Positions 2,541-49,951 of a stretch of DNA of 64,000 nt are shown here, piece after piece. The number at the start of each line of letters is the position of its first letter. Position 1 is the first letter of the stretch. The notes under the pieces are model-generated. The model saw nothing but the letters and a program-made list of their open reading frames with translations. It was not told the origin of the DNA and searched no databases. Made by a program: the position numbers and the translations under genes. The DNA is taken from the IMG/VR virus record IMGVR_UViG_3300035698_035310, positions 124,001 through 188,000 of that record, one strand, 5' to 3'.

Positions 2541-3542
2541 TTAAAAAATATTAATATTTTTTAAAAACATATGAAATGAACTGTATTCGATATTAAAATA
2601 TTGTTGAATTTCATTTGGGGTTTTTTTATCTATATGATACATATGGCATAATATATTTATGCTGTTAAGTATATTGCGTTCAGTGTTATATGGATCACCC
2701 AACACAAAATTAAACATTTTGGATAATACTTTTGCTGATATTTTGTTGGGATTATTCCAACCTAGTGCTGGTTTCAATTTGTTATTATATACACGACCTG
2801 TTATAGATGAATATTTAATCGGAGTATATGGATGTTTAATCGCAGAACGTCGATTGATATGTTTTATATTGGCTGTATCGATTTTTTGTTCAAATAAATA
2901 ATTGTCAAATGGTTCATTGTGTTTAGTTGCCCATTTTAAAATATTATCAAATAATATTTCTTTGGATATTGCATTATCTGAACCTTTTAATGAATTAACC
3001 GAATTCATTAAAAATTGACAATTAGCAGGATGTGAAATAATATCAGGATGCATTTTTAAATCAAATCCGCTTTTTACTGAAAACATATGATCATGGCAGA
3101 CGCCATCTTTTTTTGTTAAGGGATTATAAAATCCATGCTTAACATATAAATCATAACCAAGAAATGTATCATAATATTTTTCAATAAATCTAAATGAACA
3201 TAATTGTTTATATCGTTTATATTGCACGCCGTGCGTTGTAGGCAAACCATTACTTTTTATTAATGACGCACGTTGCCGCTGTCTTGATTCGGTTGTGCGT
3301 ATATTATTAGAATGTATACCACCACATTTGGACGAACAAAAAATATTACCATTTTGATGCTTTTCGTATGATATAATAGATTTACATATGGAACATAATT
3401 TTGGATTTTCTTCATATACATTTTTAACTTTAGCACGACTGTATTTTTGTGAACAGGTTTGTGTACAAAATTTGCTATGACGCTTATCTTTTGGTGTAAA
3501 CTCTATTTTACACTGATGGCATATATATTTGTTTGTTGACAT
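2541..3542 (-). CDS. HNH-type homing endonuclease-like protein
   Basis: N-terminal CxxC/CxxxC repeats plus DHMFSV...HPANCQ...NSLK motif; free-standing, convergent on the tRNAs. Confidence 0.65.
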   Translation of the reverse strand: MSTNKYICHQCKIEFTPKDKRHSKFCTQTCSQKYSRAKVKNVYEENPKLCSICKSIISYEKHQNGNIFCSSKCGGIHSNNIRTTESRQRQRASLIKSNGLPTTHGVQYKRYKQLCSFRFIEKYYDTFLGYDLYVKHGFYNPLTKKDGVCHDHMFSVKSGFDLKMHPDIISHPANCQFLMNSVNSLKGSDNAISKEILFDNILKWATKHNEPFDNYLFEQKIDTANIKHINRRSAIKHPYTPIKYSSITGRVYNNKLKPALGWNNPNKISAKVLSKMFNFVLGDPYNTERNILNSINILCHMYHIDKKTPNEIQQYFNIEYSSFHMFLKNINIF

Positions 3543-4120: not shown

Positions 4121-4509
4121 ATCAAGATATATGGGATCGATTAGATAAAGTTAGCACATTCAGGCTTACTTCATATTTGAAAAATGAATATCCACAAGTG
4201 GTTGGTGTCATTCTTTTCAATTTGTCTAGGAAAACGGTTGCTGGTGTAATGGATGAATTACCAGAAAATTTTGCTATGGAAGTTGTAATGCGTATGTTGC
4301 GCACGGATGATGTTCGCAAGGAAGTTATTGATATCATTGAAGACACATTACAGGATGAATTTTTTAATAATGTAGTCACTTATGACAATAAAGAAAAATT
4401 TATAGGTGATATGTTCGATGTTATGGTTCATTCTGATCACATGGTAGAACAGCTTGAAGAACGCAATCGTGAAATGGCTGAAAAAGTTAAGGGGTATATG
4501 GACACATGA
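4117..4509 (+). CDS. fliG: flagellar switch protein FliG, middle domain only
   Basis: YLKNEYPQ (EHPQ motif), LPENFAMEVVMRMLR and LEERNREMAEKVK match alphaproteobacterial FliG-M plus helix MC; N- and C-domains absent. Confidence 0.85.
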   Translation: MNQDIWDRLDKVSTFRLTSYLKNEYPQVVGVILFNLSRKTVAGVMDELPENFAMEVVMRMLRTDDVRKEVIDIIEDTLQDEFFNNVVTYDNKEKFIGDMFDVMVHSDHMVEQLEERNREMAEKVKGYMDT

Positions 4510-5024
4510 TTAATCAATCTATGATAGAAGCATTAATACCGACAATGAAGAACACTGCATTTAAAGGTATTTGCACTAATCCAGATATTCAACTTGATAA
4601 TTTGGCACTTATGACATTTGGTGAATATGTTGATACAATACCGCTTCCTGCAATGTGTTGTAAGTTTGATTTTGCTGGATATGCTGCATTTATCATATTT
4701 GATAGTTCATTGATATATTCTATGGTTGATGTTTTATCTGGTGGTCGTCGTGGCACCGCTGCAATGCGAATTGAAGGCAGGGGATATACAACAATTGAAA
4801 AGCGCATTATTAAAGAATTAGTAATGGAATCAATTGTGAATGAGTTATTGTATGAACTCAATATATTATCAAAAGATATATATATGGAAATAGAACATAT
4901 AAGTCTCAGTCCAGATAATATGAGAAAGCAATTATCTGAAAATGAAATGGTTCAAATTGCACGAATGAGAGTAGACTTGGATGACCGTGGTGGTCGTTTC
5001 GAATTATGCGTTGAAGAACATTAA
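4506..5024 (+). CDS. fliM: flagellar switch protein FliM, middle (CheC-like) domain only
   Basis: FGEYVDTIPLP, DSSLIYSMVDVLSGGRRG, RIEGRGYTTIE and RVDLDDRGG match alphaproteobacterial FliM-M; CheY-binding N-terminus and SPOA domain absent. Confidence 0.85.
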   Translation: MINQSMIEALIPTMKNTAFKGICTNPDIQLDNLALMTFGEYVDTIPLPAMCCKFDFAGYAAFIIFDSSLIYSMVDVLSGGRRGTAAMRIEGRGYTTIEKRIIKELVMESIVNELLYELNILSKDIYMEIEHISLSPDNMRKQLSENEMVQIARMRVDLDDRGGRFELCVEEH

Positions 5025-5821: not shown

Positions 5822-6037
5822 ATGATGAAACACAATCTTCGGCATATAAATGATGCCCCTATAGATAAACCATTTATTGCATATAAAACGGATGGCGATA
5901 CTGTTATAGCAAAATATGGAGATAGCAATCAACCAGATAATTTACCTTGGGTTAGCGAAAGTCGTGGTTTTGGTAATGAAGATTTTATTGCTTGGCAACC
6001 GCTGCCTGATCTATACATGAATCGTGGTGATTTGTAA
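5822..6037 (+). CDS. hypothetical protein
   Basis: 71-aa ORF, AAGGAG SD, terminal AWQPLP motif. Confidence 0.65.
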   Translation: MMKHNLRHINDAPIDKPFIAYKTDGDTVIAKYGDSNQPDNLPWVSESRGFGNEDFIAWQPLPDLYMNRGDL

Positions 6038-6474
6038 TGCCACATGACAAAATTATAAAAGCGCGTGAAGAAATGCGCAAATCATATGGTTTTTATGGAA
6101 AACTATTAGATGTGTTTGATATACACGCAACTGGCAATGATGAACAACCTGTTTCGACCATTGCTATATATGATAATATTATAGAGTATAATCCTGATTT
6201 TATAAATGATTTAGAACATGATCAAATTATATTTGCTTTGGCGCATGTTATATTGCTTATGATATTCAAATGCAATGAACGTCGTGGTGATCGTGATCGG
6301 TTAATATGGAACAGTGCGTGCAATTATTCAATTAACAATATACTTGTTAAACAAAACATAGGTCGCAAGACTAATGAATGCTTGCTATCTGATGATTATG
6401 ATGATATGATAATTGAACAAATTTACGAAGATTTAATATCAAAAGGATTCAATTATGGGCAAGGTAAAAAATAA
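6037..6474 (+). CDS. DUF2201 N-terminal (putative metallopeptidase) domain-like protein with degenerate HExxH
   Basis: YNPDF, FALAHVILL, RRGDRDRLIWNSACNYSINNIL. Confidence 0.6.
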   Translation: MPHDKIIKAREEMRKSYGFYGKLLDVFDIHATGNDEQPVSTIAIYDNIIEYNPDFINDLEHDQIIFALAHVILLMIFKCNERRGDRDRLIWNSACNYSINNILVKQNIGRKTNECLLSDDYDDMIIEQIYEDLISKGFNYGQGKK

Positions 6475-6502: not shown

Positions 6503-6946
6503 ATGATGGGTAAATCCATTTCACAAAACCGCAAAGTGCGCCATAACTATACCATTGATGATGAGTATGAAGCGGGTATTGTATTACAGGGCAACGAAGT
6601 AAAAAGTTTGGCTGTTGGACAGTGCAGCATTGCTGAATCGTATGTTACCATTGAAGGCAATGAAGCATTTTTGGTTAATGCGCATATTGATCCATATGAT
6701 TTAGGTTCTAAGTTTGTGGCACAAGAGCCACGACGTCGGCGCAAATTATTGTTGCATAAACGCGAGATAAAGAATTTGCTTGTCAAATCGCAACAAGGGG
6801 GTTATACTATAGTTGCATTATCGATGTACTTCAATGACACGGGCAAGGTAAAACTTAAAATTGCCACTGCCAGAGGAAAGAAGAACTACGATAAGCGTGC
6901 CACGGAGAAGCAACGTGATTGGGATCGTGATAAGCGCAATTTATAG
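6503..6946 (+). CDS. smpB: SsrA-binding protein SmpB
   Basis: NRKVRHNY, EAGIVLQGNEVKSL, RRRKLLLHKREI, ARGKKNYDKR. Confidence 0.95.
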   Translation: MMGKSISQNRKVRHNYTIDDEYEAGIVLQGNEVKSLAVGQCSIAESYVTIEGNEAFLVNAHIDPYDLGSKFVAQEPRRRRKLLLHKREIKNLLVKSQQGGYTIVALSMYFNDTGKVKLKIATARGKKNYDKRATEKQRDWDRDKRNL

Positions 6947-7334: not shown

Positions 7335-8366
7335 ATGTTTAATTTTAAAGATGTAGGATGGAAAAAATTAACGGCAGTGGGGACAATTAGTTTCTTTGTT
7401 ATATATTTCATTGTTACGAGCATTCATGTTCAATACGCATCGGTTCGACCACATGTACTCAATGAAAACATTATCGTATATGATGAAATTGATGTTGTTG
7501 GTTATCGAACGATTTCTGCTGCAAGGCAGCTTATCACAATGTTGACTAATAAAACTGGTGGATATATGTCTAACGACAAACTACCACCATATAGTTGGGC
7601 TGATGATATGCCTAATTGGGAGTTTGGTGTTATTAAAGTTCTTCGTGGTTATAACATTGTTCTTCGTGAAAACTTTACACGATCACAAACACAATCAGTT
7701 GAAGATAAAGACGCGGTTGCAGCGATGACTGCACTTAACGTAGACAATCTTTCATGGATGTTCCCATCAGTTGAAGGGTGGCCTTGGACAAAGGGCGAGT
7801 ATGTTAAATCCAGCGAATCGTTGTTTGCACTTGAAAAACGATTACTTGATAACAATCCTGCCGACGGAAACTTTTTCACACGTGCTACATCGTTGGCGAC
7901 ATTTATTAATCGCAGCAATAAAGTTTTAGGTAGCCACAGCCAACTATTATCGGCATCTGTTACCAAAGAACGCATTAACACCGATATGACGGGTGACAAA
8001 AATGCAGAAGAAGCCAAACCACAAGAATATATCAACTCTGATATTTTAACATCGTGGTTACAAATCGATGATAATTTTTGGGAAGCACAGGGTTCAATCT
8101 ATGCATTGAGTGTTATCCTTAAAGCGATGGAAAGCGATTTTTATAAAGTGCTTGAAGATAAGAACGCACTGCCAGCGCTACGCCAGATCATTGTTGAACT
8201 GGAAACTGCTCAGGGATTGGTTTATTCGCCACTAATTATTAATGGTGCAGGTTTAAACTCGACGCCTTATGGACTTGGTGCAAACTATTCGTTAATTTTG
8301 GCAAACTACGTTAGCCGTGCAAGTGCTGCATTGACTGATTTGGAAAAGTTGCTTAAAAACGGATAA
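7335..8366 (+). CDS. DUF2333 family membrane-anchored protein
   Basis: N-terminal TM helix; DDMPNWEFG, FTRSQTQSVED, IDDNFWEAQG, KNALPALRQIIVELE, ANYVSRASAA. Confidence 0.85.
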   Translation: MFNFKDVGWKKLTAVGTISFFVIYFIVTSIHVQYASVRPHVLNENIIVYDEIDVVGYRTISAARQLITMLTNKTGGYMSNDKLPPYSWADDMPNWEFGVIKVLRGYNIVLRENFTRSQTQSVEDKDAVAAMTALNVDNLSWMFPSVEGWPWTKGEYVKSSESLFALEKRLLDNNPADGNFFTRATSLATFINRSNKVLGSHSQLLSASVTKERINTDMTGDKNAEEAKPQEYINSDILTSWLQIDDNFWEAQGSIYALSVILKAMESDFYKVLEDKNALPALRQIIVELETAQGLVYSPLIINGAGLNSTPYGLGANYSLILANYVSRASAALTDLEKLLKNG

Positions 8367-8372
8367 TAACAC

Positions 8373-8400
8373 TTGACGTAATGTAGTATTATGTTATATT
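8373..8400 (+). promoter_or_regulatory. sigma70-type promoter with extended -10
   Basis: TTGACG-N16-TATATT with TG at -15/-14. Confidence 0.55.
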
Positions 8401-8432
8401 GATAATGAAATTGAAACTGTAGGAGAGATTAG

Positions 8433-9512
8433 ATGCAAGAATTTGAAACACAGATTAAAGAAATTAGACAACAGATTAAAAATGGTGATGTTGATCAGGA
8501 TGCGATTGCTGATGTGTTACAAAAATCTGGTATGGATATTGGTGATCTTGGTATTGACATCGATATGGAAAATGCCAAACTTTCTGATATCATGCAACAA
8601 CAAGAAGTTATGACTGGTAACATTGCTGGTTTGATTGTTGATTTGGATGGTGTTACCTCTGCCTTTGGTAGCCAGTTTAATGAAATGAAAGAAAAAACTG
8701 CGCTTGAAACGATTGTTGGTATTTTTATGAAATCCAAATCGATTGAAATGAGCCAAACACGTGTTCGTAATACTGATATCAGCGGCAACTTGAATGAGTT
8801 GATTCGTAAATCAGATACGATCACAACCATTCTCCAACAACAGTTGGAAGTTCTGGACGGCAGATTTAATATTTCTAAAGACAGCCTTAAAGGCGTATTA
8901 TCTGATCGTGAACAAACTGTTGGCGAACTTACTGATACACGTGAAAAGATTTCGGCACTTGATCCGAGACTCATTGAAGCGGAACAAGCAGTTGAAAACG
9001 AAGCAGACCCCAAATTGCGCACACAAAAAGAAACTGCGTTGCAATTGTTGAATGAAGAATACAACACACTTGTTAATGATGAGCAGCGGCTTACTGCACT
9101 TTCACAGACGCAAGAAAAATATGTGGAAATGTATAAAACGTTTGTTGATTCATTGGAGAACCAACGTTCTACGCAGATGGTGTTGATTGCCAAGTTGCAA
9201 ACAGACACGAAGCATCGTACTGTATTATATGATGCGTTAGCCAAATCATTGGTTACTGCATCACAGCAAGAAGTTGCTCATAAAATCAACGACATCGGTT
9301 CAGCGGTTGATAATGAATCACAAGTAACAATGGCAAATCTTGGTTCGGCGGCAAACAATCGCATGGCAGATATGATGGAATCACATGATGGCAATATGCT
9401 CGTTGCTAAAAAGGTTCAAGAAGAGAAAGCGAAAGCGGATGATCGTTTTGAGCGACGGTTTGGTGAAATTATGAAAAAGCACGATGCTGGAGAATATGGC
9501 AAAGCTGCTTAA
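8433..9512 (+). CDS. long coiled-coil protein
   Basis: 359 aa, helical heptad-like composition, GGAG SD. Confidence 0.75.
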   Translation: MQEFETQIKEIRQQIKNGDVDQDAIADVLQKSGMDIGDLGIDIDMENAKLSDIMQQQEVMTGNIAGLIVDLDGVTSAFGSQFNEMKEKTALETIVGIFMKSKSIEMSQTRVRNTDISGNLNELIRKSDTITTILQQQLEVLDGRFNISKDSLKGVLSDREQTVGELTDTREKISALDPRLIEAEQAVENEADPKLRTQKETALQLLNEEYNTLVNDEQRLTALSQTQEKYVEMYKTFVDSLENQRSTQMVLIAKLQTDTKHRTVLYDALAKSLVTASQQEVAHKINDIGSAVDNESQVTMANLGSAANNRMADMMESHDGNMLVAKKVQEEKAKADDRFERRFGEIMKKHDAGEYGKAA

Positions 9513-9549
9513 TCAATAGTTTTTATCTAAGATTAGAAAGGGATAGATT

Positions 9550-10707
9550 ATGAATAATGCGCGAGTAGTACAACAAGCAAATGACGAACACTTTGAGTTA
9601 ACTGACAATGCTGAAACGAAAAGATATTTTGCTAAATTCTCGCGCATTATTTCCCTTTTGAGTTCGATATCGGAATCAGAACGCAAAGCACATAAAGAAG
9701 ATTATGAAGCCGACATTATCATTGATGAATTAAGAAAGTTGTCGAATACATTCGAAGCATTATCGATGAAGTATTTGTTTACAGGTGTTGTTCACAATAA
9801 ACTACCAAAAAATCTTGAGATTGACACAACCGATTCTGGATTTCCGGTATTTCATGAGATATTACAACTTGAAAATGATATGAGCCGGGCAACTGATGAA
9901 TTTGATTCGTTGCCAGATTTTAAAACATTTAAAGATGATATGATCGATCACATGTTAAAGTATCGCACACCCGCCCGTGAATTGCAATTTGGTATGTCAC
10001 AAAAATGTTATTATGATTTGTTGACGCAGCGACGCATGTTTGTTACACGCAATATGCCAACGATTGTTCCAATTGCAACAGAAGGCGACAACGAACTTAC
10101 TTCAAAAAATAAAAAATATCTTATTCATTGGAGTGTTTATGATAGCGCCAAAAACTATCCTAATGTTTATATCATGGTTGTAGAAGATTCTGCCAAACGT
10201 TTTGGTGAGAATACATTGTTGGACGATCCTGAAATATTGAAAGAACTTAAAGATACCATTCTAAATCAATCATTGTCATCATTGAAAATGGTAACGATTG
10301 CGATGAATATCGACAAAGATTTTGAACACTTGCATCCATTAAGTTTGAAACGGATTTATATTGGACCAATGTATAGCAATCGTTATACACACCACAATGA
10401 TAACATCCAACGGGTTCTTAAAGAAGCAAAGCAGGGTTCAGATTGGGTGTTTGCATGGACGGTAGAAACATTGCTTTCAAAAGGAACCAAGACAATCAAG
10501 AAAGGATTGTTTGGCGACCAATTGCTTCAAGTGTATTATGTTGATCAGCACGATCATGAATCATTCCAAAGCGGTAGCACTGAAACTGAGTATCATATGG
10601 TATTACCATACGAATCGTATCAGTGTTTACACGAAGACCCAACCAATCCATTGCATGGAATTTTCATCAAGGTGGTTGATAAAGATGGGCGGATATTGGA
10701 ATTATGA
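9550..10707 (+). CDS. hypothetical protein of the DUF2333/AAA/DUF6638 cluster
   Basis: 385-aa ORF directly following the coiled-coil gene. Confidence 0.75.
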   Translation: MNNARVVQQANDEHFELTDNAETKRYFAKFSRIISLLSSISESERKAHKEDYEADIIIDELRKLSNTFEALSMKYLFTGVVHNKLPKNLEIDTTDSGFPVFHEILQLENDMSRATDEFDSLPDFKTFKDDMIDHMLKYRTPARELQFGMSQKCYYDLLTQRRMFVTRNMPTIVPIATEGDNELTSKNKKYLIHWSVYDSAKNYPNVYIMVVEDSAKRFGENTLLDDPEILKELKDTILNQSLSSLKMVTIAMNIDKDFEHLHPLSLKRIYIGPMYSNRYTHHNDNIQRVLKEAKQGSDWVFAWTVETLLSKGTKTIKKGLFGDQLLQVYYVDQHDHESFQSGSTETEYHMVLPYESYQCLHEDPTNPLHGIFIKVVDKDGRILEL

Positions 10708-10931
10708 TACATTTTGATTTTGTATTAAGTGATGTCGATGCAGAGAATTTAATGTCTTTATTCGGTACTGCTATTGGCAATGATAATAATCAAATCATGA
10801 AAGAGATGGTTAAAGACGACCATGATGTTGATATCATTAAAGCATACAAACGCGATATTGAATATTTAAAAGAGTTGAAACTCAAAATGTCGAATACGCG
10901 GGTTGCAGAAAATGAAATCATTGCCGAGTAA
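10704..10931 (+). CDS. hypothetical protein
   Basis: ATGA overlap with the upstream gene. Confidence 0.6.
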   Translation: MIHFDFVLSDVDAENLMSLFGTAIGNDNNQIMKEMVKDDHDVDIIKAYKRDIEYLKELKLKMSNTRVAENEIIAE

Positions 10932-11116
10932 AGGTCATTTATTTTGGCGCAAAGAATTTTATTCTATGTGTTCTAAACATCAGATTAATAATCCCGATTG
11001 TTCATTGTGTAAAAATGGTAGATGGTGTAATGTATGGAAGCAGCACGTATCGCATATAATATTTATGATTGCTCCAGAGTTGTGGCGTTGGTGGGTTAAT
11101 AAAAGGAGATCGTAAT

Positions 11117-11302
11117 ATGGCATCATTTTCAAAAGAAGAATACATTGCTTATTTGACTAGCAAAATGAAACATCGATGCACAAGATATAAACGTGCTTCT
11201 GATGATAATCAACTTATCAAAAATGATTTGGATATCATATACGATGAACTATCAGAGTTGGAAACAATTATGAATAGTTCTAGAGACACATTTTACTTAT
11301 AG
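11117..11302 (+). CDS. hypothetical protein
   Basis: AAGGAG SD before ATG 11117 (in frame with track ORF 11069). Confidence 0.65.
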   Translation: MASFSKEEYIAYLTSKMKHRCTRYKRASDDNQLIKNDLDIIYDELSELETIMNSSRDTFYL

Positions 11303-11313
11303 GAGATTGTGAT

Positions 11314-11523
11314 ATGACTTTATTATATTTTAATGACGAAGAAAATGCTGCGATTGAAGAATTGGCGGCAAAACAAGGTCTTAGTTGTGCTGGTGTGTTA
11401 CGCCAAGCAGTTCGGCTATATCAACAAGCGCACCATGAACTTGAAAAGGGAAATCAACTTGGTTATTATAATGCACAAGGGAATCGAGTGATTGATAAGC
11501 CGTTTGGATGCATGGGCGATTAA
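11314..11523 (+). CDS. ribbon-helix-helix (CopG-like) small DNA-binding protein
   Basis: LYFNDEENAAIEELAAKQGLSCAGVLRQAV pattern. Confidence 0.55.
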   Translation: MTLLYFNDEENAAIEELAAKQGLSCAGVLRQAVRLYQQAHHELEKGNQLGYYNAQGNRVIDKPFGCMGD

Positions 11524-11531
11524 TAAAGCAC

Positions 11532-11559
11532 TTGACGAATATTGTATTGCGAGTATAAT
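11532..11559 (+). promoter_or_regulatory. sigma70-type promoter
   Basis: TTGACG-N16-TATAAT upstream of the AAA gene. Confidence 0.55.
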
Positions 11560-11602
11560 GTAATCAAACGCCCTATAATGAATGAAATGGAGATAAAGAA
11601 CA

Positions 11603-13525
11603 ATGGATAAAAATTTAATGGAAATCAAAGAAGCAGACATTCTTAAACATTATACATCGGTGTTTGGATTGGTTACTGACTTCAGTTATACTCCTAAAGC
11701 CAAAAAAGATTCAGGCACAGAAGAAGTAGTTTCCGATACCACATACGTTCGTCGCACTAAGCGTTCTCATGTGTCGGGTATTAAATCAACTGGTTCTAAA
11801 TCTAGTGTTGCATTAATGGATACAATCGAAGGCGTTGATGGTGATGATCCGTTGATTACCGAAATTCAAAGCCATATGATTCGTGTCATTCGCCGTGCTA
11901 TGGCTATTGCCAGTGAAGTGGTAGACGTGTTTGGAAATTCAACTAATCTCAATCGTCTTAAAGAAGCAAATGGCAATGGACGTGTTTCCGAAATTGAACG
12001 AATTGAATTTCAAGAATTATTGAACACTGCGTCATTGATTGGATTGTTTGTTACCACAAGTTATGTAACATTTATTCTTTCTGATTATATGACCGACAGT
12101 GACACCATGCAAATTTCCATCGATCCAACCGAAGAAATTGTAATTGACAATCCGGTTATCGCACTGAAAGGCGCACTATGGGAACTTGATGACAATATTA
12201 AAAAATACGCAAAAGATGATATTACGCTAGTCCGCGTAGTGAAAGATTATTTTGCACAGTTGATGGCTGAATTGCAAATTCGTAAATCAGGAATTCGTCA
12301 CGCCGAAGTATTCATTGACAATAACTATCGGGTTGAAGAAGATAAATTTGACATCATTGGTTTTGATACAGCCAAAAAAGGTAAATCAACCAAACTTATT
12401 ATGCAATTTGTTAGACCAGATCAAGTTGTTGGTAATCACATCGCGAAATATCAAGCATTAAAATTAGCAAAAATGGTTGCACTATATGATTTCACACGCC
12501 AACGTAATCCGATATTGGATGTTGCTGGATTTCCACTTGGTGTTATTGGCGACGGTAATCCTGGAACTGGTAAGACAACTCTTTATCAAATGTTTTGTGG
12601 ATTGGTTAATGATTATGCACAGGCGCAAAATCGCCCATTCGTTGTTGAAGTGTTTACGCCTGATATGATTAGTTCATATCAAGGTAAAACCGCACAGAAC
12701 GCTAAACAGGCGCTAACAAGCGGTATGGACCCACACGTATTCGGCAGTGTGCTGTTTGATGATGTCGATCAAACGACAGCAAGCCGTGGTGATGATAAAG
12801 CATCCGCTGGACAACAAGAAGTAACGTCGGTTCTTATGGAAACACTTGCTGGTGCCAATACAATCATCCGTGGGAACGCTTCTGCCTTTTTGTTTAGTAA
12901 TTATCCAGAAAAAGTAGATGACGCCCTACGGCAGCGATGTGGGCTTCGTTGGTTGGTTGATGGGCCACAAACATTGGAAGATTATCAAGATATTCTTGCT
13001 TTATTGTTGGGTAAAAATCATACACTTGACTTGGGTGGTATTGAGTTGTATACTACACAAGATATCAAGAAAGCGATTGGACGTAGTTACGAGAAGCATA
13101 ATCGCCCCACAGAAACTGCATTGATTGAAGTATTTGATCGCGTAGTTGATGAACAGGGCGAGTTGAATACCATCGAAAAAGTTGGTATTTACCTGAAAGC
13201 GATTCAAGGTGCTGATCCACGATTTACAGGTCGATCAATTAAGAATATTACCGATACTTGTAAAATGCGTTCGGCTGATTTTGAAGTTCCTGACGAATGG
13301 GTTGAAAATCCAGAAGTATTTGTTGAACTTGACTATGATCGCAAGGTTGATATGCTTAAAGAGTTAGTTACGCCTATTACAAGCGAAATGGTTTTACAAG
13401 AAACTAACCGTTATGCTGATTCAGAGTTTCGTTATTCTGATAAAAGCGATGAAGCCGAAATTGTAAATATGGTTCGTTATCACCATAATAAAACTGAGGC
13501 TGACAAACGTATCAGAAATGATTGA
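11603..13525 (+). CDS. AAA+ ATPase
   Basis: Walker A GNPGTGKT, Walker B VLFDDVDQ, sensor/Arg-finger FSNYPEKVDDALRQR. Confidence 0.9.
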   Translation: MDKNLMEIKEADILKHYTSVFGLVTDFSYTPKAKKDSGTEEVVSDTTYVRRTKRSHVSGIKSTGSKSSVALMDTIEGVDGDDPLITEIQSHMIRVIRRAMAIASEVVDVFGNSTNLNRLKEANGNGRVSEIERIEFQELLNTASLIGLFVTTSYVTFILSDYMTDSDTMQISIDPTEEIVIDNPVIALKGALWELDDNIKKYAKDDITLVRVVKDYFAQLMAELQIRKSGIRHAEVFIDNNYRVEEDKFDIIGFDTAKKGKSTKLIMQFVRPDQVVGNHIAKYQALKLAKMVALYDFTRQRNPILDVAGFPLGVIGDGNPGTGKTTLYQMFCGLVNDYAQAQNRPFVVEVFTPDMISSYQGKTAQNAKQALTSGMDPHVFGSVLFDDVDQTTASRGDDKASAGQQEVTSVLMETLAGANTIIRGNASAFLFSNYPEKVDDALRQRCGLRWLVDGPQTLEDYQDILALLLGKNHTLDLGGIELYTTQDIKKAIGRSYEKHNRPTETALIEVFDRVVDEQGELNTIEKVGIYLKAIQGADPRFTGRSIKNITDTCKMRSADFEVPDEWVENPEVFVELDYDRKVDMLKELVTPITSEMVLQETNRYADSEFRYSDKSDEAEIVNMVRYHHNKTEADKRIRND

Positions 13526-13541
13526 TTGAAGGGATAAAATA

Positions 13542-14819
13542 ATGCAATTACTTGTCGATAATGAGTTAAAGTATGGAAATTTGTTGTTGGTTGATTCTGC
13601 ACATTTAATCGCACGGTATAATCGTGCATTGAATGTTATATGTGGAAAAAAGACCGAGTTGGAAATTTTTCATATTGATGGCAGTGGATATAGCCCCGAA
13701 GTCGCGAAAGAACTCGACGATAAAGAATATATGAATCCACACGGTGTTAATAAGAAAATCATCATTTTGTCATTAGAACAAGAAGGTCTTCCAGTATTGG
13801 ATTCTTATTTCTCCACTACACGTGATTTGATTAGACGATTTATTCAAGATAATAAATCTGAACTTTTTGCACTAACGAGTCGTGATGTGGTTTATGGCGA
13901 ACTGGAGAATTCAACATTCAAAATTGAAAGTTTCACGGATTTGCTATGTATTAAACGCATCATATTTGAAATCAATACAGTTGGTGATTCCATCAAAAAA
14001 GGAAAACAGCTTACCAGTTTGATTAAATCATTTATGGTTAACGATAATATGTGGCATGATGAAAAAACGGTTGAAGAGATTATTGGGTTATCATCTGTGG
14101 TTGGTGATATTCGTCGACACCAAGTGACGCCGTCGCACACCGAATATAAACAAATCAATTTTTATTCACGGCATTACGGCGGCGTATATGTATTCAATCA
14201 CGACAATGGTGATTATACAGTTATTGCGCATGAAGAACAATACAGAAAAGAGGCTGAAACTTGTCATTTAAATGTTAAATTCATCCACATAGATGATAAA
14301 AAAGAAGTGATTGCATTTTTAAAGAAGAATAACATCGTTGAGATGTATAGTGATCGATATTTGCGCAAGAATATAGATTTGATGCGTGAAAAAATTAATT
14401 TCATCGCAATTGATCATATGTCACAGACGCACACAGACGCAGATTTGACGGATATTAGCGATGATGAAATTAAAAAATATATTTATGATCACTATGATGA
14501 GTTACCTAAAGAGTTCCGCGTTCTTTCAAAAGCAGTAAAATTGATTGATAACGGATATTCTGTGGATTTGGAATCTGGTTCTGATGATATATTTTTCTAC
14601 TTTGCTCGTTCTAGCGATCACGATCTCAAAGATTTGGTTAATCAATTGATTGCGTATTACACGCCGTTAGATTTTCTAAATGTGTTTATATCCAACAAAC
14701 GTGCTTTTTATGAGTTGTATGACGAGTGGTCCAATAGTAAAAAATCATTTGTTGTTAATTACTTGGTTAGAGAATATCAACAAGATAAACACAGAATTAA
14801 AGGTAAATTCTTTGGGTAA
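13542..14819 (+). CDS. DUF6638 family protein
   Basis: YGNLLLVDSAHLIARYNRAL, FHIDGSGYSPE, LFALTSRDVVYGEL, NFYSRHYGGVYVF recalled as family motifs. Confidence 0.7.
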   Translation: MQLLVDNELKYGNLLLVDSAHLIARYNRALNVICGKKTELEIFHIDGSGYSPEVAKELDDKEYMNPHGVNKKIIILSLEQEGLPVLDSYFSTTRDLIRRFIQDNKSELFALTSRDVVYGELENSTFKIESFTDLLCIKRIIFEINTVGDSIKKGKQLTSLIKSFMVNDNMWHDEKTVEEIIGLSSVVGDIRRHQVTPSHTEYKQINFYSRHYGGVYVFNHDNGDYTVIAHEEQYRKEAETCHLNVKFIHIDDKKEVIAFLKKNNIVEMYSDRYLRKNIDLMREKINFIAIDHMSQTHTDADLTDISDDEIKKYIYDHYDELPKEFRVLSKAVKLIDNGYSVDLESGSDDIFFYFARSSDHDLKDLVNQLIAYYTPLDFLNVFISNKRAFYELYDEWSNSKKSFVVNYLVREYQQDKHRIKGKFFG

Positions 14820-16481: not shown

Positions 16482-17282
16482 ATGACAAAAATTCAAGAAT
16501 TTCTACAAGAAGCTACCGTAATAGATACCGAAACTACCGGCGTAAATTTTAAAGAAGATGAAGTAGTCGAAGTTGCAGGTGGACGTTTAATAAATGATGA
16601 ATGGAAAGTTGAATCGCTTCTCATGGGTTCAAATAATCCAGTTCCACCCGGTGCAAGTGCCGTTAATAACATCAGTAATAAAATGATTGCAGGGCTACCA
16701 AAATTTGATCAATGCATAGAAACTATAAATGATATTGTACATGTAGATTCAACAAAATATATGGTTGCACATAACTCCAATTTTGATAGACGAATGATGC
16801 TTGTTTCTTATGAACGAGCAAATGATACAGTATTCAATAAATTCGAAATTCAAGAAGATTGGATTTGCACATGGAAACTGGCACAACAATTATATCCAAA
16901 AGATGGTGTGATGAAATACAGTTTGGCGTATTTGCGATACTATCTTGAGTTAGACATCAGTGATGATATGCTTGCTCACCGCGCTGGCGCAGATGTTACA
17001 ATGTGTGGCATATTGCTTCAACGATTGATAGAAGAAGCCATCAAGCAAGATAAAATCGATGATACACAAGACATTGGTACACAATTACAAAAACTTTGTT
17101 GGCAACGAATGAATATAGATTTATGGCCTTTAGGAAAGCACAAAGGAACTAAGATATCAGAAGTTCCAACAAAATATCTCATGTGGTGCACCGATAAAAT
17201 TGATTTATTGGATGAAACTCACACTAAATTCGATAAAGATTTATTCACTTCAGTAGTAAAAGTATTAGAATCGAGGCTGTAA
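16482..17282 (+). CDS. DEDDh 3'-5' exonuclease (ExoX/DnaQ-like) with C-terminal DUF3820-like domain
   Basis: IDTETTG, VAHNSNFD, HRAGAD; WPLGKHKG...VPTKYLMW. Confidence 0.85.
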   Translation: MTKIQEFLQEATVIDTETTGVNFKEDEVVEVAGGRLINDEWKVESLLMGSNNPVPPGASAVNNISNKMIAGLPKFDQCIETINDIVHVDSTKYMVAHNSNFDRRMMLVSYERANDTVFNKFEIQEDWICTWKLAQQLYPKDGVMKYSLAYLRYYLELDISDDMLAHRAGADVTMCGILLQRLIEEAIKQDKIDDTQDIGTQLQKLCWQRMNIDLWPLGKHKGTKISEVPTKYLMWCTDKIDLLDETHTKFDKDLFTSVVKVLESRL

Positions 17283-18398: not shown

Positions 18399-18427
18399 TT
18401 GACAAATATGCATTATTGACGTATATT
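18399..18427 (+). promoter_or_regulatory. sigma70-type promoter; predicted leaderless dnaJ transcript
   Basis: TTGACA-N17-TATATT; ATG lies 7 nt after the -10 box. Confidence 0.5.
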
Positions 18428-18433
18428 ATATCT

Positions 18434-19279
18434 ATGAAAAAATATTATGAAACATTAGAAGTCGAAAAAACAGCAACCGATGCCGAAATTAAAAAATCGT
18501 ATCGCAAGTTGGCTATGAAATATCATCCTGATACAAATCCCGATGATGTAACAGCCGAAAATAATTTCAAAGAAATAAATGAAGCATATGAGGTTTTATC
18601 CGACGAAACGAAAAAATCTAACTATGATACATTTGGCGATCCTGATGGTAGACCTACACCACACACTAGCCAGCACGGTTTTGGTGGTGGTTTTCAATCA
18701 GCAACAGATTTTAATGATATTTTCAATGATATTATGAATGCACGAAGTGCACCAAAAAATGCTCATGCACAATCACAAATGACTATTACATTGGAAGAGG
18801 CGTATGTAGGATCATCAGTTGAGATAGAAATAACTAATCATAAAAATATATCATCAAAGCAAAATATAAGAATTCCCGCTGGTATTAAACATGGTATGAC
18901 GTTACGCCTTGCGGGTGCCGGTCATCATCACATTGAGGAGTTGCCACCCGGTGATTTATTGGTTAATATACAAATCACACCACATTCCATATTTACTGTG
19001 GTAGATTACAATTTAATCATGGAAGAAAAAATTAGCATGATCGAAGCCGTGTTTGGCAAGGAAATAGAAGTTACTACATTGGCTGGAAAAACTTTGAAAT
19101 TAGAAATTCCAAAAGGAACGCAACCAAATCATAAAATTCGATTAAAAGGTAAAGGAATGCCCGTATTAAACAGAAAAGATGTATTTGGTGATTTATATAT
19201 AATTGTCAATGTTGAAATACCTACGAATATAACACAAAAACAACGAGATTTATTAAGTGAATTTAATGAAGTTTCTTGA
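18434..19279 (+). CDS. dnaJ: DnaJ/CbpA-type co-chaperone (no zinc finger)
   Basis: J domain YYETLEV...YRKLAMKYHPD; G/F linker; C-terminal IPAGIKHG, GDLLV, IPKGTQ. Confidence 0.9.
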   Translation: MKKYYETLEVEKTATDAEIKKSYRKLAMKYHPDTNPDDVTAENNFKEINEAYEVLSDETKKSNYDTFGDPDGRPTPHTSQHGFGGGFQSATDFNDIFNDIMNARSAPKNAHAQSQMTITLEEAYVGSSVEIEITNHKNISSKQNIRIPAGIKHGMTLRLAGAGHHHIEELPPGDLLVNIQITPHSIFTVVDYNLIMEEKISMIEAVFGKEIEVTTLAGKTLKLEIPKGTQPNHKIRLKGKGMPVLNRKDVFGDLYIIVNVEIPTNITQKQRDLLSEFNEVS

Positions 19280-19867: not shown

Positions 19868-22126
19868 ATGCCTAACGGATTTGACCAACGACACATTTCT
19901 ATAATGCTTCAAAAAGCAGTAACATTAGCAGAAAAATACGATCACATATATATAACATTAGAACATATCAGTTTAGTATTACTGGATGATAAGTCCGTTG
20001 ATCACGGTATTAAAGAATGCGGCGGCGACATAAAACTTATTAAAGAAATGGTTTTGACTGCATTGTTAGATGAAGCAGATATAACTGAAGCAGGAACTGA
20101 GCCACAACCAACAAGAGCAGTCATCAATGTTATTCAACGGGCAATCCAGCATTCTGTTGGATCAGGCCGCAATACAGTTGAACCATTTTATCTTATGGCA
20201 AGTTTGTTAATGGAAAAAGATTCCGTTGCTGTATGGGCATTAGCACAACAAAATGTTGATCGTGTAAGTTTTATTAGAACTATAAATGTTCCACCATCAG
20301 GACAAAATAAAGGTGGCCCGATGAATGAACTCGATCCTATAACGGGTCAACCTATGCCACAACCTGAAAATGCATTAAGAGATTATTGTGTTAATTTGAA
20401 TGAAAAGGTAATTGCTGGTGATATTGATCCATTGATAGGTCGCGAAAAAGAAATTGAACGGTCACTACAAGTTTTATCTAGACGACGCAAAAACAATCCA
20501 TTGCTTGTTGGTGAGCCAGGAGTTGGTAAAACCGCTATTGCAGAAGGATTGGCATGGAAAATTGTTAATGAAACCGTGCCAAATTATATCAAAGATTCTA
20601 TTGTATATTCGTTGGATATTGGTGCACTTATGGCTGGTGCCAAATTTCGCGGTGATGTCGAAGAACGATTAAAAGCGGTTCTTGCCGGATTGGAAGAAGT
20701 TGGCAAAACCAACAAAACCATATTATTCATTGATGAAATTCATACCATTATTGGTGCGGGTGCTACATCAGGTGGAAGTATGGATGTTAGTAACCTATTG
20801 AAACCCGCACTTGCTGCTGGTTCATTACGTTGCATGGGTTCCACCACATATGCTGAATATAATAAGTATTTCGAAAAAGATGCGGCACTTAAGCGTCGTT
20901 TCAAAAAAATTGATATTATTGAACCTACTGTTGATGAAACAAAAACTATTATCAAAGGTTTGGCAAAATATTTTGCTGAGTATCATGAAGTTAAATTCAC
21001 AAAAGAAGCATTAATGAGTGCAGTTGATTTATCCGTTAAGCATATACACGATAACAAACTTCCAGATAAAGCGATTGATGTTATTGATGAGGCGGCGGCA
21101 GCACAAAGATTATTCGATGGCGAAGATCGCCTTGAAATCATTGATGTTAAACAAATTGAAGAAACCGTTGCAAAGATTGCAAGGATTTCTATTGATGCAA
21201 CATCAAAAACCGACAAAGATAGATTGCGTAACCTTGCAGAAAATCTAACAACACATGTGTTTGGTCAAGAAGAAGCGATTGATGTTCTAACCAAGGCAGT
21301 TAAATTAAGCAAATCTGGATTGCGTGAAGAAAATAAACCGATTGGTAATTTCTTATTCAGTGGACCTACAGGCGTAGGTAAAACCGAAGTTGCAAAACGT
21401 CTTGCCGATGAACTAGACGTTCCGTTGGTGCGATTTGATATGTCTGAATATATGCAAAAGCACGAAGTGTCTAAACTTATTGGATCGCCACCTGGTTATG
21501 TTGGTCATGATGATAGTGATGGATTTTTAATTGAAGAAATTGATAAGCATAATTATTGTGTTTTATTGTTAGATGAAATCGAAAAAGCACACCAAGATAT
21601 ATTCAACGTTCTGTTACAAGTTATGGATAATGCAACACTAACCGGTGGTCGCAATAAAACAGTGCGCTTTGACAATGTTATAATCATCATGACATCAAAT
21701 GCTGGTGCATCAGACCTTGCAAAAGAAGTTATGGGATTTGGCAACGAAGAGCGAGTTGGCGATGATCTTATAGCCATCGAAAAATTATTTACACCTGAAT
21801 TTAGAAATCGTTTGGATAAAATCGTTGGATTTAAACCATTACAACAAGAAATAATGAATAAAGTTGTTGTTAAATTTATAAAACAATTGAAAGTTCAACT
21901 TAAAACACAGGATGTTAAACTTACGTTGATGAAGAAAGCCATTGAGTGGCTTGCCGTTAAAGGATACAGTTCCAAATATGGAGCACGACCACTTTCGCGT
22001 GTAATAGACAATCATATCAAGCAGCCAATATCTGAAGAGTTATTATTTGGTCAACTTGAAAATGGTGGTTCAGTTAAAATTGACATCGTTGAAGACGAAC
22101 TTGAATTCACTTACAAACCAAAATAA
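19868..22126 (+). CDS. clpA: ATP-dependent Clp protease ATP-binding subunit ClpA
   Basis: Clp-N domain, GEPGVGKT and GPTGVGKT Walker A motifs, FIDEIH, RFDMSEY, no ClpB M-domain. Confidence 0.92.
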
Positions 22127-28346: not shown

Positions 28347-28742
28347 ATGGTACAAAAAATGACACGTGACGAATTTCAAAAAATGGTTGATGACGCGGCT
28401 GGTTATCAGTGCAAGAAAACTGATGGAGTGGTGACTGCACTTAAAATCGAATGGTCTGTTGGCGGTCAATCTGGTGGTAGTTGTTGGGATGAAGGAGACT
28501 CGACATATCATGGAACAAGCGGTGAAGCAGAGCCAGAGTTCGAAGACCTTGATAGTATCTTGCTGGCGGTTGCCCCACAACTCAGTTTTTTACATTATAA
28601 AAAATTAATGCAAAAAATTGAAACCGACGATTACCGTCAAAACGATTACTATGGAAACTACACCGATTACGCAACAAAAACAATCACAGTCGATGATATT
28701 TGGGTGTTTTTGATTGAGTATGACATGATTGAACAAGCATGA
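28347..28742 (+). CDS. conserved phage hypothetical protein
   Basis: WSVGGQSGGSCW, EPEFEDLD, DYYGNYTDY. Confidence 0.7.
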   Translation: MVQKMTRDEFQKMVDDAAGYQCKKTDGVVTALKIEWSVGGQSGGSCWDEGDSTYHGTSGEAEPEFEDLDSILLAVAPQLSFLHYKKLMQKIETDDYRQNDYYGNYTDYATKTITVDDIWVFLIEYDMIEQA

Positions 28743-36165: not shown

Positions 36166-36272
36166 TTCCTTGGCTTTTATGATAGTATAAATAATAAAGT
36201 AGTGGGACAGCCCAACTTCCTTGGCGGGTTTTAGTTGTTGAAACCAACTAATTACCACTATATCTATTTATT
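36166..36272. promoter_or_regulatory. convergent TATAAATA-type boxes flanking a structured element; SD-complementary repeat
   Basis: TATAAATA (+) 36186-36193; AATAAATA (-) 36272-36265; TTCCTTGGC at 36166-36174 (SD of GIY-YIG gene on -) repeated at 36217-36225; stem TAGTGG/CCACTA. Confidence 0.6.
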
Positions 36273-36288
36273 TTTTGGAGTTAAAATC

Positions 36289-37506
36289 ATGAATGACCAT
36301 CGCGAGATTGCTACAGCTTTAGACTTATTTCATTTTGAGGAGCATTCACCAGGAATGGTATATTGGCATCCTGAAGGGTTTAAATTATATCGAACCATAG
36401 AAGAATATATGCGAAGCATGCATGAAAAATATGGATATAAAGAAATTAGAACACCAATAATGGTCAATAAATCTTTATGGAAATTGTCTGGTCATTGGGA
36501 TAAATTTCAAGACAATATTTTTATTGCTGGTGAAATAGGTGAAGTAATAAGCGATGAGTTAATTTATACTGACGGGCAATATGTAATGTCTCCGATGAAT
36601 TGTCCAAATCATATACAAGTGTACCAAAAGGGAACAAAGTCTTACAAGATGCTACCTGATCGTTTATTTGAATTTGGTGTGGTGCATCGCAATGAACCAT
36701 CTGGATCATTGGCTGGCATTATGAGATTGCGAAGTTTTACACAAGATGACTCGCATATACACTGTACTGAAGATCAAATTTTGAGTGAAACAACCAATTT
36801 TATCAATATGCTTCAAGAAGTTTATTCTAAGTTTGGGTTCAATGACGTCGCTGTAAAACTTGCCACTCGATGTGAAGAACGCATTGGCGACGATGCCAGT
36901 TGGGATAAAGCCGAGAAAGCATTAGAAGATGCTTGTATACATCTTGGATTGGAATACACAATTAATCCCGGTGAATCAGCATTCTATGGCCCAAAACTTG
37001 AGTTCACGCTACAAGATAGCCTTGGTCGTGATTGGCAATGTGGAACCATCCAGATTGATTTTAACATGTGCGAACGATTGGGTGCTACATACATTGACGA
37101 AAATGGTGATAAGAAACATCCGGTATTGATTCACCATGCTGTATTGGGAAGTTTGGAACGCTGGGTTGGTGTATTGCTTGAGAACAGCAATGGTGAACTA
37201 CCGTTGTGGCTTGCCCCTACACAAGTGGTTGTTGCCAGTATTACCAGTGATGTTAATGACTATGCTGAAGAGAAAATGGTTACACTTAGTGGTATCGGAT
37301 ATCGAGTTGAGTTGGATGACCGAAATGAAAAAATCGGTAAGAAAATCAAAGACGCACAGAAACGACGTATTCCATATATGCTTATTGTGGGTAAAAAGGA
37401 AAAAGAGAATCAAATGGTCAACGTTCGCAAATTGAACGGCGACCAAGATGATATGGAGTTGATAGATTTTATAGGATCATTCGTCAAATCTACAAATGAA
37501 AGGTGA
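36289..37506 (+). CDS. thrS: threonine--tRNA ligase lacking the N-terminal TGS/editing domains
   Basis: starts at DHREI...DLFHF...PGMVYWHPEG; MNCPNH, HRNEPSG, FTQDDSH, AFYGPKL, WQCGTIQ; GGAG SD before ATG 36289. Confidence 0.93.
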   Translation: MNDHREIATALDLFHFEEHSPGMVYWHPEGFKLYRTIEEYMRSMHEKYGYKEIRTPIMVNKSLWKLSGHWDKFQDNIFIAGEIGEVISDELIYTDGQYVMSPMNCPNHIQVYQKGTKSYKMLPDRLFEFGVVHRNEPSGSLAGIMRLRSFTQDDSHIHCTEDQILSETTNFINMLQEVYSKFGFNDVAVKLATRCEERIGDDASWDKAEKALEDACIHLGLEYTINPGESAFYGPKLEFTLQDSLGRDWQCGTIQIDFNMCERLGATYIDENGDKKHPVLIHHAVLGSLERWVGVLLENSNGELPLWLAPTQVVVASITSDVNDYAEEKMVTLSGIGYRVELDDRNEKIGKKIKDAQKRRIPYMLIVGKKEKENQMVNVRKLNGDQDDMELIDFIGSFVKSTNER

Positions 37507-48745: not shown

Positions 48746-49951
48746 ATGCGCCAAGAATATGCAATCGACATCGCAACCAATCCCGGCATTCATGCAATCG
48801 GCGTCATCGTCGACGTTTTGACGTTTACAAGCGACCAATATCACAACAGCGAAGACGGCGAATCGCATTTAACGGATTCACTGTGGGATAATTTGTATCG
48901 GTTCTTACAGGTTACTGATCCAGTTAATAAGTATCTCATTGGCGTAGGCTCTGAAGTGCGCGGTGGGGCTGGTGTTCCATTGCCATATGTAATGCCTGGT
49001 TTAGATCAAGTTCACGAAGGCGATACCGTTAAATGGATTATGACTAATAATCTCATGGGTGCAACCATTATCACAATGGATAAGATGGATGGCAACTCTG
49101 GACAAATAATTTATGACACCAACGGCAATCTTCAAATGGCATTTAGTCGTGGTTCAAGCACTGATGGTCAAGATTTAACACGGCATTTCAAACGCATGAA
49201 AAATCTTCCCACTATTAATGTTGGCACCGATCTTCACACCAGTATAGCGGTTCGTGTTGAAGTTGAAATGAAAGAAGAAGTGTTTAATGATTTGAATGAT
49301 CGGGGATTGATTAACAAGCGCAGTGGTGAAAAACAGAGTAATGCGAGAAATTACATCGGAGGACAAATGAATTCCACCGAAGCAACGCAAATATTTTATG
49401 ACAACGTTGATGTTATCGCATATGAGATTATGTTTCCGTTGATGGATACAAAAAAAGAAGAACTTACCGCACTTGGTCTTTATGGCTTTACGGTTGTTAA
49501 ATGGTCAGAACACATTGGTGGTACACTTGGTGATGATATGCTAACAGCCGCGCTTGAACAAGCACATAAAACAACCCCTTGGGCGATTGATGGGTTTGTT
49601 ATGATACCAAATGACCGCGCAGTTCGTGATGCAATTCCTGCACGCAAAGGAAGCAGCTTGAATCCAGTACATACTAAAAAATTCAAGGTAGGGCAGGACG
49701 ACAATGTTGCTGGAACGACAGTTATAAAAGTAGAATGGAAAGTATCTAAAGATGGATATTTAAAACCAACCGTATGCATTGATCCAGTTGATTTGGCAGG
49801 CGTTACAATATCAAAAGCAACGGGAATTAACGCTAAATATATATATGATAATAAAATTGGACCGGGTTCAAAAGTGTCAATAACACGAGCCGGTGATGTT
49901 ATACCAAGGTTATTATCTAGTTCCCCGATGCCAGAACAAAATATGGACTAG
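48746..49951 (+). CDS. ligA: NAD-dependent DNA ligase, N-terminal part (Ia, adenylation, OB)
   Basis: KMDG motif I, SRG, RVEV, DGFV, WKVSKDGYLKPTV, PVDLAGVTISKATG, RAGDVIP. Confidence 0.88.
   Translation: MRQEYAIDIATNPGIHAIGVIVDVLTFTSDQYHNSEDGESHLTDSLWDNLYRFLQVTDPVNKYLIGVGSEVRGGAGVPLPYVMPGLDQVHEGDTVKWIMTNNLMGATIITMDKMDGNSGQIIYDTNGNLQMAFSRGSSTDGQDLTRHFKRMKNLPTINVGTDLHTSIAVRVEVEMKEEVFNDLNDRGLINKRSGEKQSNARNYIGGQMNSTEATQIFYDNVDVIAYEIMFPLMDTKKEELTALGLYGFTVVKWSEHIGGTLGDDMLTAALEQAHKTTPWAIDGFVMIPNDRAVRDAIPARKGSSLNPVHTKKFKVGQDDNVAGTTVIKVEWKVSKDGYLKPTVCIDPVDLAGVTISKATGINAKYIYDNKIGPGSKVSITRAGDVIPRLLSSSPMPEQNMD

Follow-up and report, generated by a model that had tools for sequence, protein, structure and literature searches.

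Gene content of the locus

We analysed a 64,000-nucleotide stretch of viral DNA, referred to below as the window, which corresponds to bases 124001-188000 of a 359-kb IMG/VR record (IMGVR_UViG_3300035698_035310; 359,044 bp) that we accept as belonging to a huge phage. Our study deals with five genes located between positions 7335 and 14819 of the window, for which a reading of the sequence alone had proposed a module composed of a DUF2333 membrane protein, a coiled-coil protein (here CC359), a 385-amino acid (aa) protein (P385), an AAA+ ATPase (AAA640) and a DUF6638 protein. Reading of the open reading frames (ORFs) combined with Pfam searches confirmed that the five ORFs are open and co-oriented, all of them on the plus strand. 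We found that this locus is an intact copy of a widespread and unstudied alphaproteobacterial operon, and that, except for the AAA core of its ATPase, the system lies outside every characterised family.

The first gene (7335..8366, plus strand) encodes a DUF2333 protein of 343 aa, which matches Pfam PF10095 with an E-value of 7.7e-91 and a score of 304.9 bits, for a cut-off of 22, over positions 13-330 of the 330 positions of the profile. The protein has a single N-terminal transmembrane (TM) helix, at residues 12-30, and none was found in the other four proteins of the module. The proposal that the module is linked to the membrane is thus borne out by this helix. Because the lysines K5, K10 and K11 precede it, the large C-terminal domain of DUF2333 probably faces the periplasm.

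The second gene (8433..9512, plus strand) encodes CC359, a 359-aa core protein predicted to be all-helical and without any Pfam match, whose homologues form more than 1000 clusters, all unnamed or annotated as hypothetical. A sigma-70-like promoter match, TTGACG-16-TATATT with a TG, is located just upstream of it (8373..8400, plus strand) and is a consensus match only. The CC359 family has a mean column identity of 69% and a strongly conserved C-terminal half, including a C-terminal motif. In the AlphaFold2 (AF2) model the long helices span residues 116-189, 193-274 and 279-351; this model, with a pLDDT of 60, is confident only at residues 130-260, and apart from the long central hairpin the monomer folds poorly. 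No strongly hydrophobic segment was found in the protein.

P385 (9550..10707, plus strand), a core protein of 385 aa without Pfam match, is modelled by AF2 with a pLDDT of 87.8 and a pTM of 0.86 as two domains, an N-terminal helical bundle (residues 14-169) and a beta-rich C-terminal domain (residues 167-385). Its 469 homologous clusters are all unnamed or hypothetical. When the model was compared with the PDB (Foldseek, VIA) and the ESM Atlas, Z reached 6.3 at most and TM-scores stayed below 0.35; the helical half filled the list, so that the C-terminal domain was barely probed. Neither CC359 nor P385 has a match in Pfam, PHROGs or NCBIfam, and PADLOC yielded only weak partial matches. One of these, to BrxA (E 1.5e-4), falls in the beta-rich part of P385; since BrxA is a helical protein, we treated this match as due to chance and did not retain a BrxA-like P385.

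The ATPase gene (11603..13525, plus strand) encodes the 640 aa of AAA640, in which PF00004 is matched at residues 318-449 (E 9.7e-12, 45.9 bits). We identified a Walker A motif GxxxxGKT at residues 316-325 (G316..G323-K324-T325), a pore loop Y359-Q360-G361, the sensor-1 residue N433 and the arginines R443 and R445 of the second region of homology (SRH), all of which are conserved across 68 sequences of a family whose mean column identity is 71%. The Walker B motif is D386-D387, that is, Asp-Asp instead of Asp-Glu, in the whole family. The sequence-only reading had announced intact Walker A and B motifs and an arginine finger: Walker A and the two arginines are indeed kept, and Walker B is present in the modified DD form. 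The nearest solved AAA domains are those of Afg2, PAN, CbbX, fidgetin and Vps4 (E 4e-8 to 1e-3), aligned over the AAA core only, and the PADLOC matches to TRIP13 (E 1.2e-7) and IetA (E 1e-3) also concern this core alone. Judged by its motifs, AAA640 belongs to the classic AAA clade. With Afg2/Spaf, PAN/Rpt, CbbX, fidgetin/katanin, Vps4 and TRIP13 it shares a single AAA module with Walker A, an aromatic pore loop, sensor 1 and an SRH with two arginines and, as in adaptor-binding AAA proteins, an N-domain precedes the motor. It differs from these enzymes in that only about 160 residues of the AAA core can be aligned, with E-values no better than 1e-8, the N-domain of about 300 aa and the conserved C-terminal tail having no known relatives, in its Asp-Asp Walker B, and in its partners CC359, P385 and DUF6638, which are unlike any known adaptor.

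The last gene (13542..14819, plus strand) encodes the core component DUF6638, a protein of 425 aa which matches PF20343 with an E-value of 5.9e-100 and 335.6 bits, for a cut-off of 27; its 55 homologous clusters all carry PF20343. Residues D46, D115, E120 and D189 are invariant and E53, D173 and H211 nearly so, and because of these conserved acidic and histidine residues DUF6638 could conceivably be an enzyme. The ESM Atlas provided no lead for DUF6638, whose own model has a pLDDT of 0.38. Sequence and profile searches of the PDB with CC359, P385, DUF6638 and DUF2333 gave nothing below E 0.03.

Small genes had also been noticed ahead of the ATPase gene, and we found four ORFs on the plus strand within 10704-11523, between the genes of P385 and AAA640. 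The first (10704..10931, 75 aa) has a start that overlaps the stop of P385 by 4 nt; the second (10912..11115, 67 aa from its ATG) contains four Cys residues and a hydrophobic Trp-rich tail; neither has a family match. The third (11117..11302), of 61 aa from an ATG preceded by GGAGA, also exists as a longer form starting at a TTG, which has no family match. The fourth (11314..11523, 69 aa) weakly matches RHH_1 (E 0.0016, below the Pfam cut-off) and phrog_3887, a transcriptional regulator (E 7e-4), and is a possible ribbon-helix-helix regulator. A second sigma-70-like match, TTGACG-16-TATAAT (11532..11559, plus strand), lies 44 nt upstream of the ATPase gene and is the best of the region, with 11 of 12 consensus positions; it is again a consensus match only, and the region as a whole shows no excess of such sites.

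A syntenic operon with an exchangeable membrane anchor

The order of the four soluble core proteins, CC359, P385, AAA, DUF6638, is invariant in 66 out of 66 bacterial loci, which fall into two clades. This synteny agrees with the earlier statement that similar genes cluster in marine proteobacteria, and the phage genes do form a real conserved module. On a Hoeflea chromosome and on a 600-kb metagenome contig, for instance, proteins of approximately 360, 380, 638 (AAA), 430 (DUF6638) and 375 (DUF2333) aa are encoded contiguously on one strand. Between the phage and the 66 bacterial loci, identity amounts to 42-53% for CC359, 26-43% for P385, 41-50% for the ATPase and 30-40% for DUF6638. The P385 profile detects a single copy in each of 77 genomes out of 151 (51%) of one alphaproteobacterial order, presumably the Rhodobacterales according to the organism names of the homologues, and in 23 of 401 sampled Pseudomonadota; in another sample of 401 genomes, drawn at class level, the Pfam model of DUF6638 was matched in 5. 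The flanks of the operon in bacteria are partly conserved and often metabolic. Our literature search returned no paper on DUF6638, and DUF2333 and DUF1523 were mentioned only in passing. In addition, no core protein is convincingly matched by PADLOC-DB v2. With neither literature nor PADLOC or PDB matches, the module is uncharacterised, as had been supposed.

DUF2333, which had been listed among the five genes of the module, is not a fixed member of it. We distinguished two types of bacterial loci. In type A (57 loci), the core is followed by an 88-aa protein with two TM helices (15 of the 17 loci checked) and by DUF1523 (56/57), whereas in type B (9 loci) it is followed by a divergent DUF2333. 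TM helices are confined to these anchors. Most bacterial versions therefore use DUF1523; moreover, among the 75 of 401 Pseudomonadota genomes that possess DUF2333, mostly as a canonical stand-alone gene, 66 are devoid of the core.

In a quick maximum-likelihood tree of the ATPase, type B is split off with a support of 100, and a phage clade, formed by the window and a 7-kb low-GC contig named L057 (support 99), is placed on the side of type A, with long branches. In the window phage and in L057, DUF2333 is encoded upstream of CC359, unlike its downstream position in bacteria. The DUF2333 of the window is of the canonical subfamily, with a median identity of 42% to 30 canonical loci and of about 26% to type B. 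The core of L057 is 58-61% identical to that of the window, and its DUF2333, located at the same upstream position, is type-B-like (37-43% identity). Within the phage lineage, the DUF2333 anchor was swapped between subfamilies. The core has thus been linked to DUF2333 in at least three separate ways, and no other observation argues as strongly for a joint action of anchor and core. Outside these loci, a DUF2333 gene is present in one further named phage record only, the unannotated record of Pseudomonas phage Y11 (OQ572412.1:49859-50695), whose protein is 44% identical to that of the window.

The module is present in at least three other low-GC phage-like contigs, two of which, longer than 230 kb, have the same flanking gene order. 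The phage proteins are 52-82% identical to their relatives in other low-GC contigs, some of them shown and some presumed to be phage-like. Because the frames remain open at such identities, we conclude that the module has resided in phages for a long time under purifying selection, which has also acted on it in bacteria over the long term. Its GC content is 35%, as that of the phage, while the bacterial loci are at 58-65%. Searches among 50,697 phage records, by tblastn with DUF6638 and by blastn with the whole region, returned nothing, the P385 and AAA profiles found no relative in 2.9 million IMG/VR contigs, and a single DUF6638 sequence searched against genome contigs found no related locus. 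In phages, the module therefore represents a capture that is rare and old and has been maintained, and not an assembly accident.

Some of these relatives have peculiarities of their own. In a 70%-identical relative (ENA ERZ24794644/45) the ATPase gene is called with only 447 aa, and ahead of it lie two abutting ORFs of 354-370 aa without counterpart in the window; the gene may have been split, have received an insertion or have had its N-domain replaced. Contig L057 contains in its AAA/DUF6638 slot (L057:5646-6227) a 193-aa ORF whose product starts with a twin-arginine-like signal, RRTFLK, and is probably exported, as judged from this motif. A related phage also encodes a peptide deformylase and a peptidase M3 near the module.

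Embedded genes and possible function of the module

We observed that the bacterial operons frequently contain additional genes between the members of the core. Counting a junction as occupied when it holds more than 200 nt of extra DNA, occupation in type A reaches 49/57 at the AAA/DUF6638 junction, 35/57 at CC359/P385 and 4/57 at P385/AAA; in type B the corresponding values are 6/9, 0/9 and 2/9. The 118 embedded ORFs of at least 60 aa were distributed by blastp into 77 families, including 62 singletons. The median GC content of these ORFs is 6.6 points below that of the neighbouring AAA gene; in 48 of 65 gaps the frame on the operon strand stays open for longer than that on the other strand, and 37 out of 107 embedded ORFs overlap at their end, by 4 nt, the start of the following core gene, which indicates tight packing. 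Pfam searches on 69 family representatives detected Mrr_cat together with Mrr_N, DUF559/REase_MTES_1575, NA-iREase1, putAbiC, AbiJ_NTD4, HEPN_RiboL-PSP and Fic/DOC domains and, in addition, DUF4279, DUF2971, DUF3825, DUF4145, one HATPase_c_2, one Glycolipid_bind and a weak RRG7 match. Examples of embedded genes, from a set that comprises the bacterial loci L012 and L059-L117, are L066:12605-13429, L073:6359-7381, L064:10603-11433 and L061:12525-13073, and the unannotated ones are candidate new defence genes. Weak EAD9 matches were obtained with 7 of 30 CC359 family members; no EAD9 was found among the embedded genes.

The embedding of hypervariable defence-type genes in this operon is a new observation. 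Defence genes nested in the same orientation have been described for Hma, BREX, DISARM and type I restriction-modification (RM) systems (bioRxiv 10.1101/2024.01.29.577857). Like type I RM with PrrC/Rlo, BREX with BrxU, Hma and DISARM, the operon described here has several genes with diverse, mostly co-oriented abortive-infection (Abi), restriction endonuclease (REase) and toxin genes between its members. Because the embedding pattern, read in reverse, matches that of known immune systems, this analogy suggests that the host operon is itself conflict-related. In contrast to those systems, its core has no methyltransferase, helicase, nuclease or other recognisable immune enzyme, it is not matched by PADLOC, and its prevalence and conservation within one order are far higher.

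The account that we place first, although we would give it slightly less than an even chance, is that of a remodelling machine, driven by an AAA+ ATPase and tethered to the membrane, which acts in conflict or defence and was captured by a huge phage. AAA640 would form a ring, expected to be hexameric in the classic AAA clade, tethered at the inner membrane by an anchor whose large domain would face the periplasm, and would thread or remodel a partner protein through its conserved pore loop. The leading candidate for this substrate is CC359, because it and AAA640 are the slowest-evolving components, co-evolve at the same rate, and the C-terminal motif of CC359 is conserved. The faster-evolving P385 and DUF6638 may act as adaptor or sensor subunits. 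The output would be a defence or conflict response, such as sensing or answering envelope or infection events, and a defence or conflict role seems the most likely one because restriction, abortive-infection and toxin genes of horizontal origin accumulate between the genes of the bacterial operon. The copy in the phage could be directed against competing phages or serve to control the envelope of the infected cell. The defence idea of the sequence-only reading thus receives indirect support from the defence-type genes inside the bacterial operons, and none from PADLOC.

A stronger form of this proposal, which we consider possible but rather doubtful, is that core and anchor together constitute a new and widespread machine for anti-phage or inter-element conflict in marine Alphaproteobacteria. 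It would consist of an inner-membrane AAA+ unfoldase platform with an operon into which interchangeable effectors (Mrr, AbiC, AbiJ/HEPN, Fic, DUF559 and others) are plugged, perhaps to be kept inactive until the machine is triggered, and would have been captured whole by a huge-phage lineage and refitted with a different DUF2333.

Several results weigh against a defence role. No core protein convincingly matches any PADLOC model, and we recognised no nuclease, protease or nucleotide-signalling domain in the core. The embedded genes were counted without a matched control; most of these ORFs lack an annotation, and some of the short ones, in high-GC DNA, may be spurious. The slot ORFs of the phage have no defence-type matches, and the four of them show no similarity to the bacterial slot genes. 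The sole complex prediction, for AAA640 with CC359 (999 residues), gave a score of 0.00, which speaks neither for nor against binding. In addition, the single copy in half of the sampled genomes of one order, the very high conservation of the ATPase and CC359 and the partly conserved, often metabolic flanks give the operon more the look of lineage housekeeping than of mobile defence; the phage neighbours SmpB, DnaJ, a ClpA/B-like ATPase and RNase T suggest proteostasis.

These last features are precisely those that favour the main rival explanation, which we also regard as possible, although unlikely. According to it, the operon is a housekeeping module of marine Alphaproteobacteria for envelope or protein quality control, with the AAA+ protein as extractor or remodeller, the phage copy belongs to an auxiliary set that keeps membrane and proteome working, and the defence genes piggy-back on a well-expressed operon. 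The peptide deformylase and peptidase M3 of the related phage, as well as the frequency of canonical DUF2333 as a stand-alone gene, mostly without the core, would also fit. However, this explanation does not account for the fact that unrelated Abi, REase and toxin genes sit precisely inside the operon in most loci, a pattern described for immune systems; moreover, the module is missing from half of the order and hence is not essential.

The sequence-only reading had compared the module with PspA/TelA-type systems and ESCRT-III. CC359 would then bind membranes as a helical polymer, which a Vps4-like AAA protein would disassemble, and we consider this improbable. The logic is indeed shared with PspA/Vipp1/ESCRT-III and their AAA partners and with TelA, in that a helical hairpin protein is encoded beside an AAA ATPase and a membrane protein in an envelope-linked setting; the clade of the ATPase includes Vps4, the model of CC359 contains a confident long helical hairpin to which the ESCRT-III hairpins of CHMP4B and Snf7 align at Z 9.2-9.3, and in language-model (ESM) features CC359 neighbours a cluster in which 10% of the members carry TelA. 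However, CC359 has no sequence or profile similarity to these proteins: among 30 CC359 family members, no match to PspA_IM30 (PF04012), Snf7 (PF03357) or TelA (PF05816) was listed by Pfam with E-values up to 5. The hypothesis that CC359 is TelA was rejected, since hhalign gave a probability of 0.09% (with shallow alignments) and the TelA HMM was silent at the operon; on two carrier genomes it found a bona fide TelA away from the operon in one and nothing in the other. The fold similarity, judged with a model of pLDDT 60, does not rise above background either, all fold matches of CC359 falling under the Z of about 13 that we took as the noise line for helical models, and the ESCRT-III hairpins score below generic bundles, of which the fold matches consist. 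The best natural structural neighbours are the pore-forming alpha-helical toxins ClyA/YaxB/PaxB/XaxAB, elongated helical bundles which outscore ESCRT-III with Z 10.1-11.7 over 220-261 residues; this likeness, with a low-confidence model, a Z under background and no strongly hydrophobic segment in CC359, is a lead only.

Phages carry homologues of host immune components, and the phage copy might thus be a counter-defence decoy whose proteins mix with the host version, or titrate it, and thereby disable it. The conflict-related look of the bacterial operon and the divergence of the phage copy, with its long branches in the ATPase tree, fit this idea, which we nevertheless judge improbable too, and slightly more so, because five genes and every ATPase motif are kept, which is more than a decoy needs. 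Finally, the rarity of the module in phages would suit host DNA that was captured only recently and does nothing for the phage, but this is very unlikely given a GC content that fits the phage and not the bacterial loci, and several related low-GC contigs that keep the module open.

If the operon encodes an immune or conflict machine, it would be among the most prevalent such systems of a Rhodobacterales-like order, a dominant group of marine bacteria, with no recognisable relative among known systems, and its slots would amount to a ready-made collection of candidate defence genes, dozens of them. If it encodes an envelope or proteostasis machine, it would provide the first context for three families of unknown function, DUF2333, DUF6638 and DUF1523, and would indicate that huge phages import whole multi-protein host machines, beyond single auxiliary genes. 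Either reading is directly testable in culturable roseobacters.

The carrier record and its other genes

The IMG/VR record that contains the window is labelled as a provirus and has a CheckV completeness of 94%. Its GC content is uniform from end to end (33-40%), and it contains 32 tRNAs and encodes a RIIA homologue (E 5e-127) and a phage-type family-B polymerase, PolB (E 2e-202); a tail-fibre match is weak. The window carries a threonyl-tRNA-synthetase-like gene whose relatives are found in phages of 469-636 kb. The sequence of the record is present in several salt-lake metagenomes, all of them DNA runs and none an RNA run. The Pfam models Terminase_6N, Terminase_6C, TerL_ATPase and Phage_capsid (HK97) have no match in the 359-kb record. 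With this caveat on its packaging genes, we accept the carrier as a huge phage. Proteins of the record are also on record in a contig of 570,750 bp; the true phage genome may be larger than the record, with the packaging genes located outside it.

Around the module, the window contains a cluster of seven host-like translation and proteostasis genes (6037-6474, 6503-6946, 16482-17282, 18416-19279, 19868-22126, 36235-37506 and 48746-49951), which encode a DUF2201-type metallopeptidase, SmpB, an RNase T-like exonuclease, DnaJ, the ClpA/B-like ATPase, the threonyl-tRNA-synthetase-like protein and an NAD-dependent DNA ligase.

ARAGORN detected two tRNAs with the amber-reading anticodon CUA, at 28369-28446 and 221822-221895 of the record, outside the window; TAG may thus be suppressed or recoded in part of the phage. 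The ORFs of the window are read without any alternative genetic code. Within the window, the genes of tRNA-Leu(UAA) (2381-2457) and tRNA-Arg(UCU) (2462-2539) adjoin a minus-strand ORF similar to HNH endonucleases (2541-3542), in otherwise plus-strand surroundings. A 1330-aa ORF on the minus strand (57023-61015), without PHROG match, is located where the GC skew changes sign. A match to FliM, a protein of the flagellar motor switch (PF02154, E 2.8e-22), was obtained with the 172-aa ORF at 4506-5024; such a gene is unusual in a phage.

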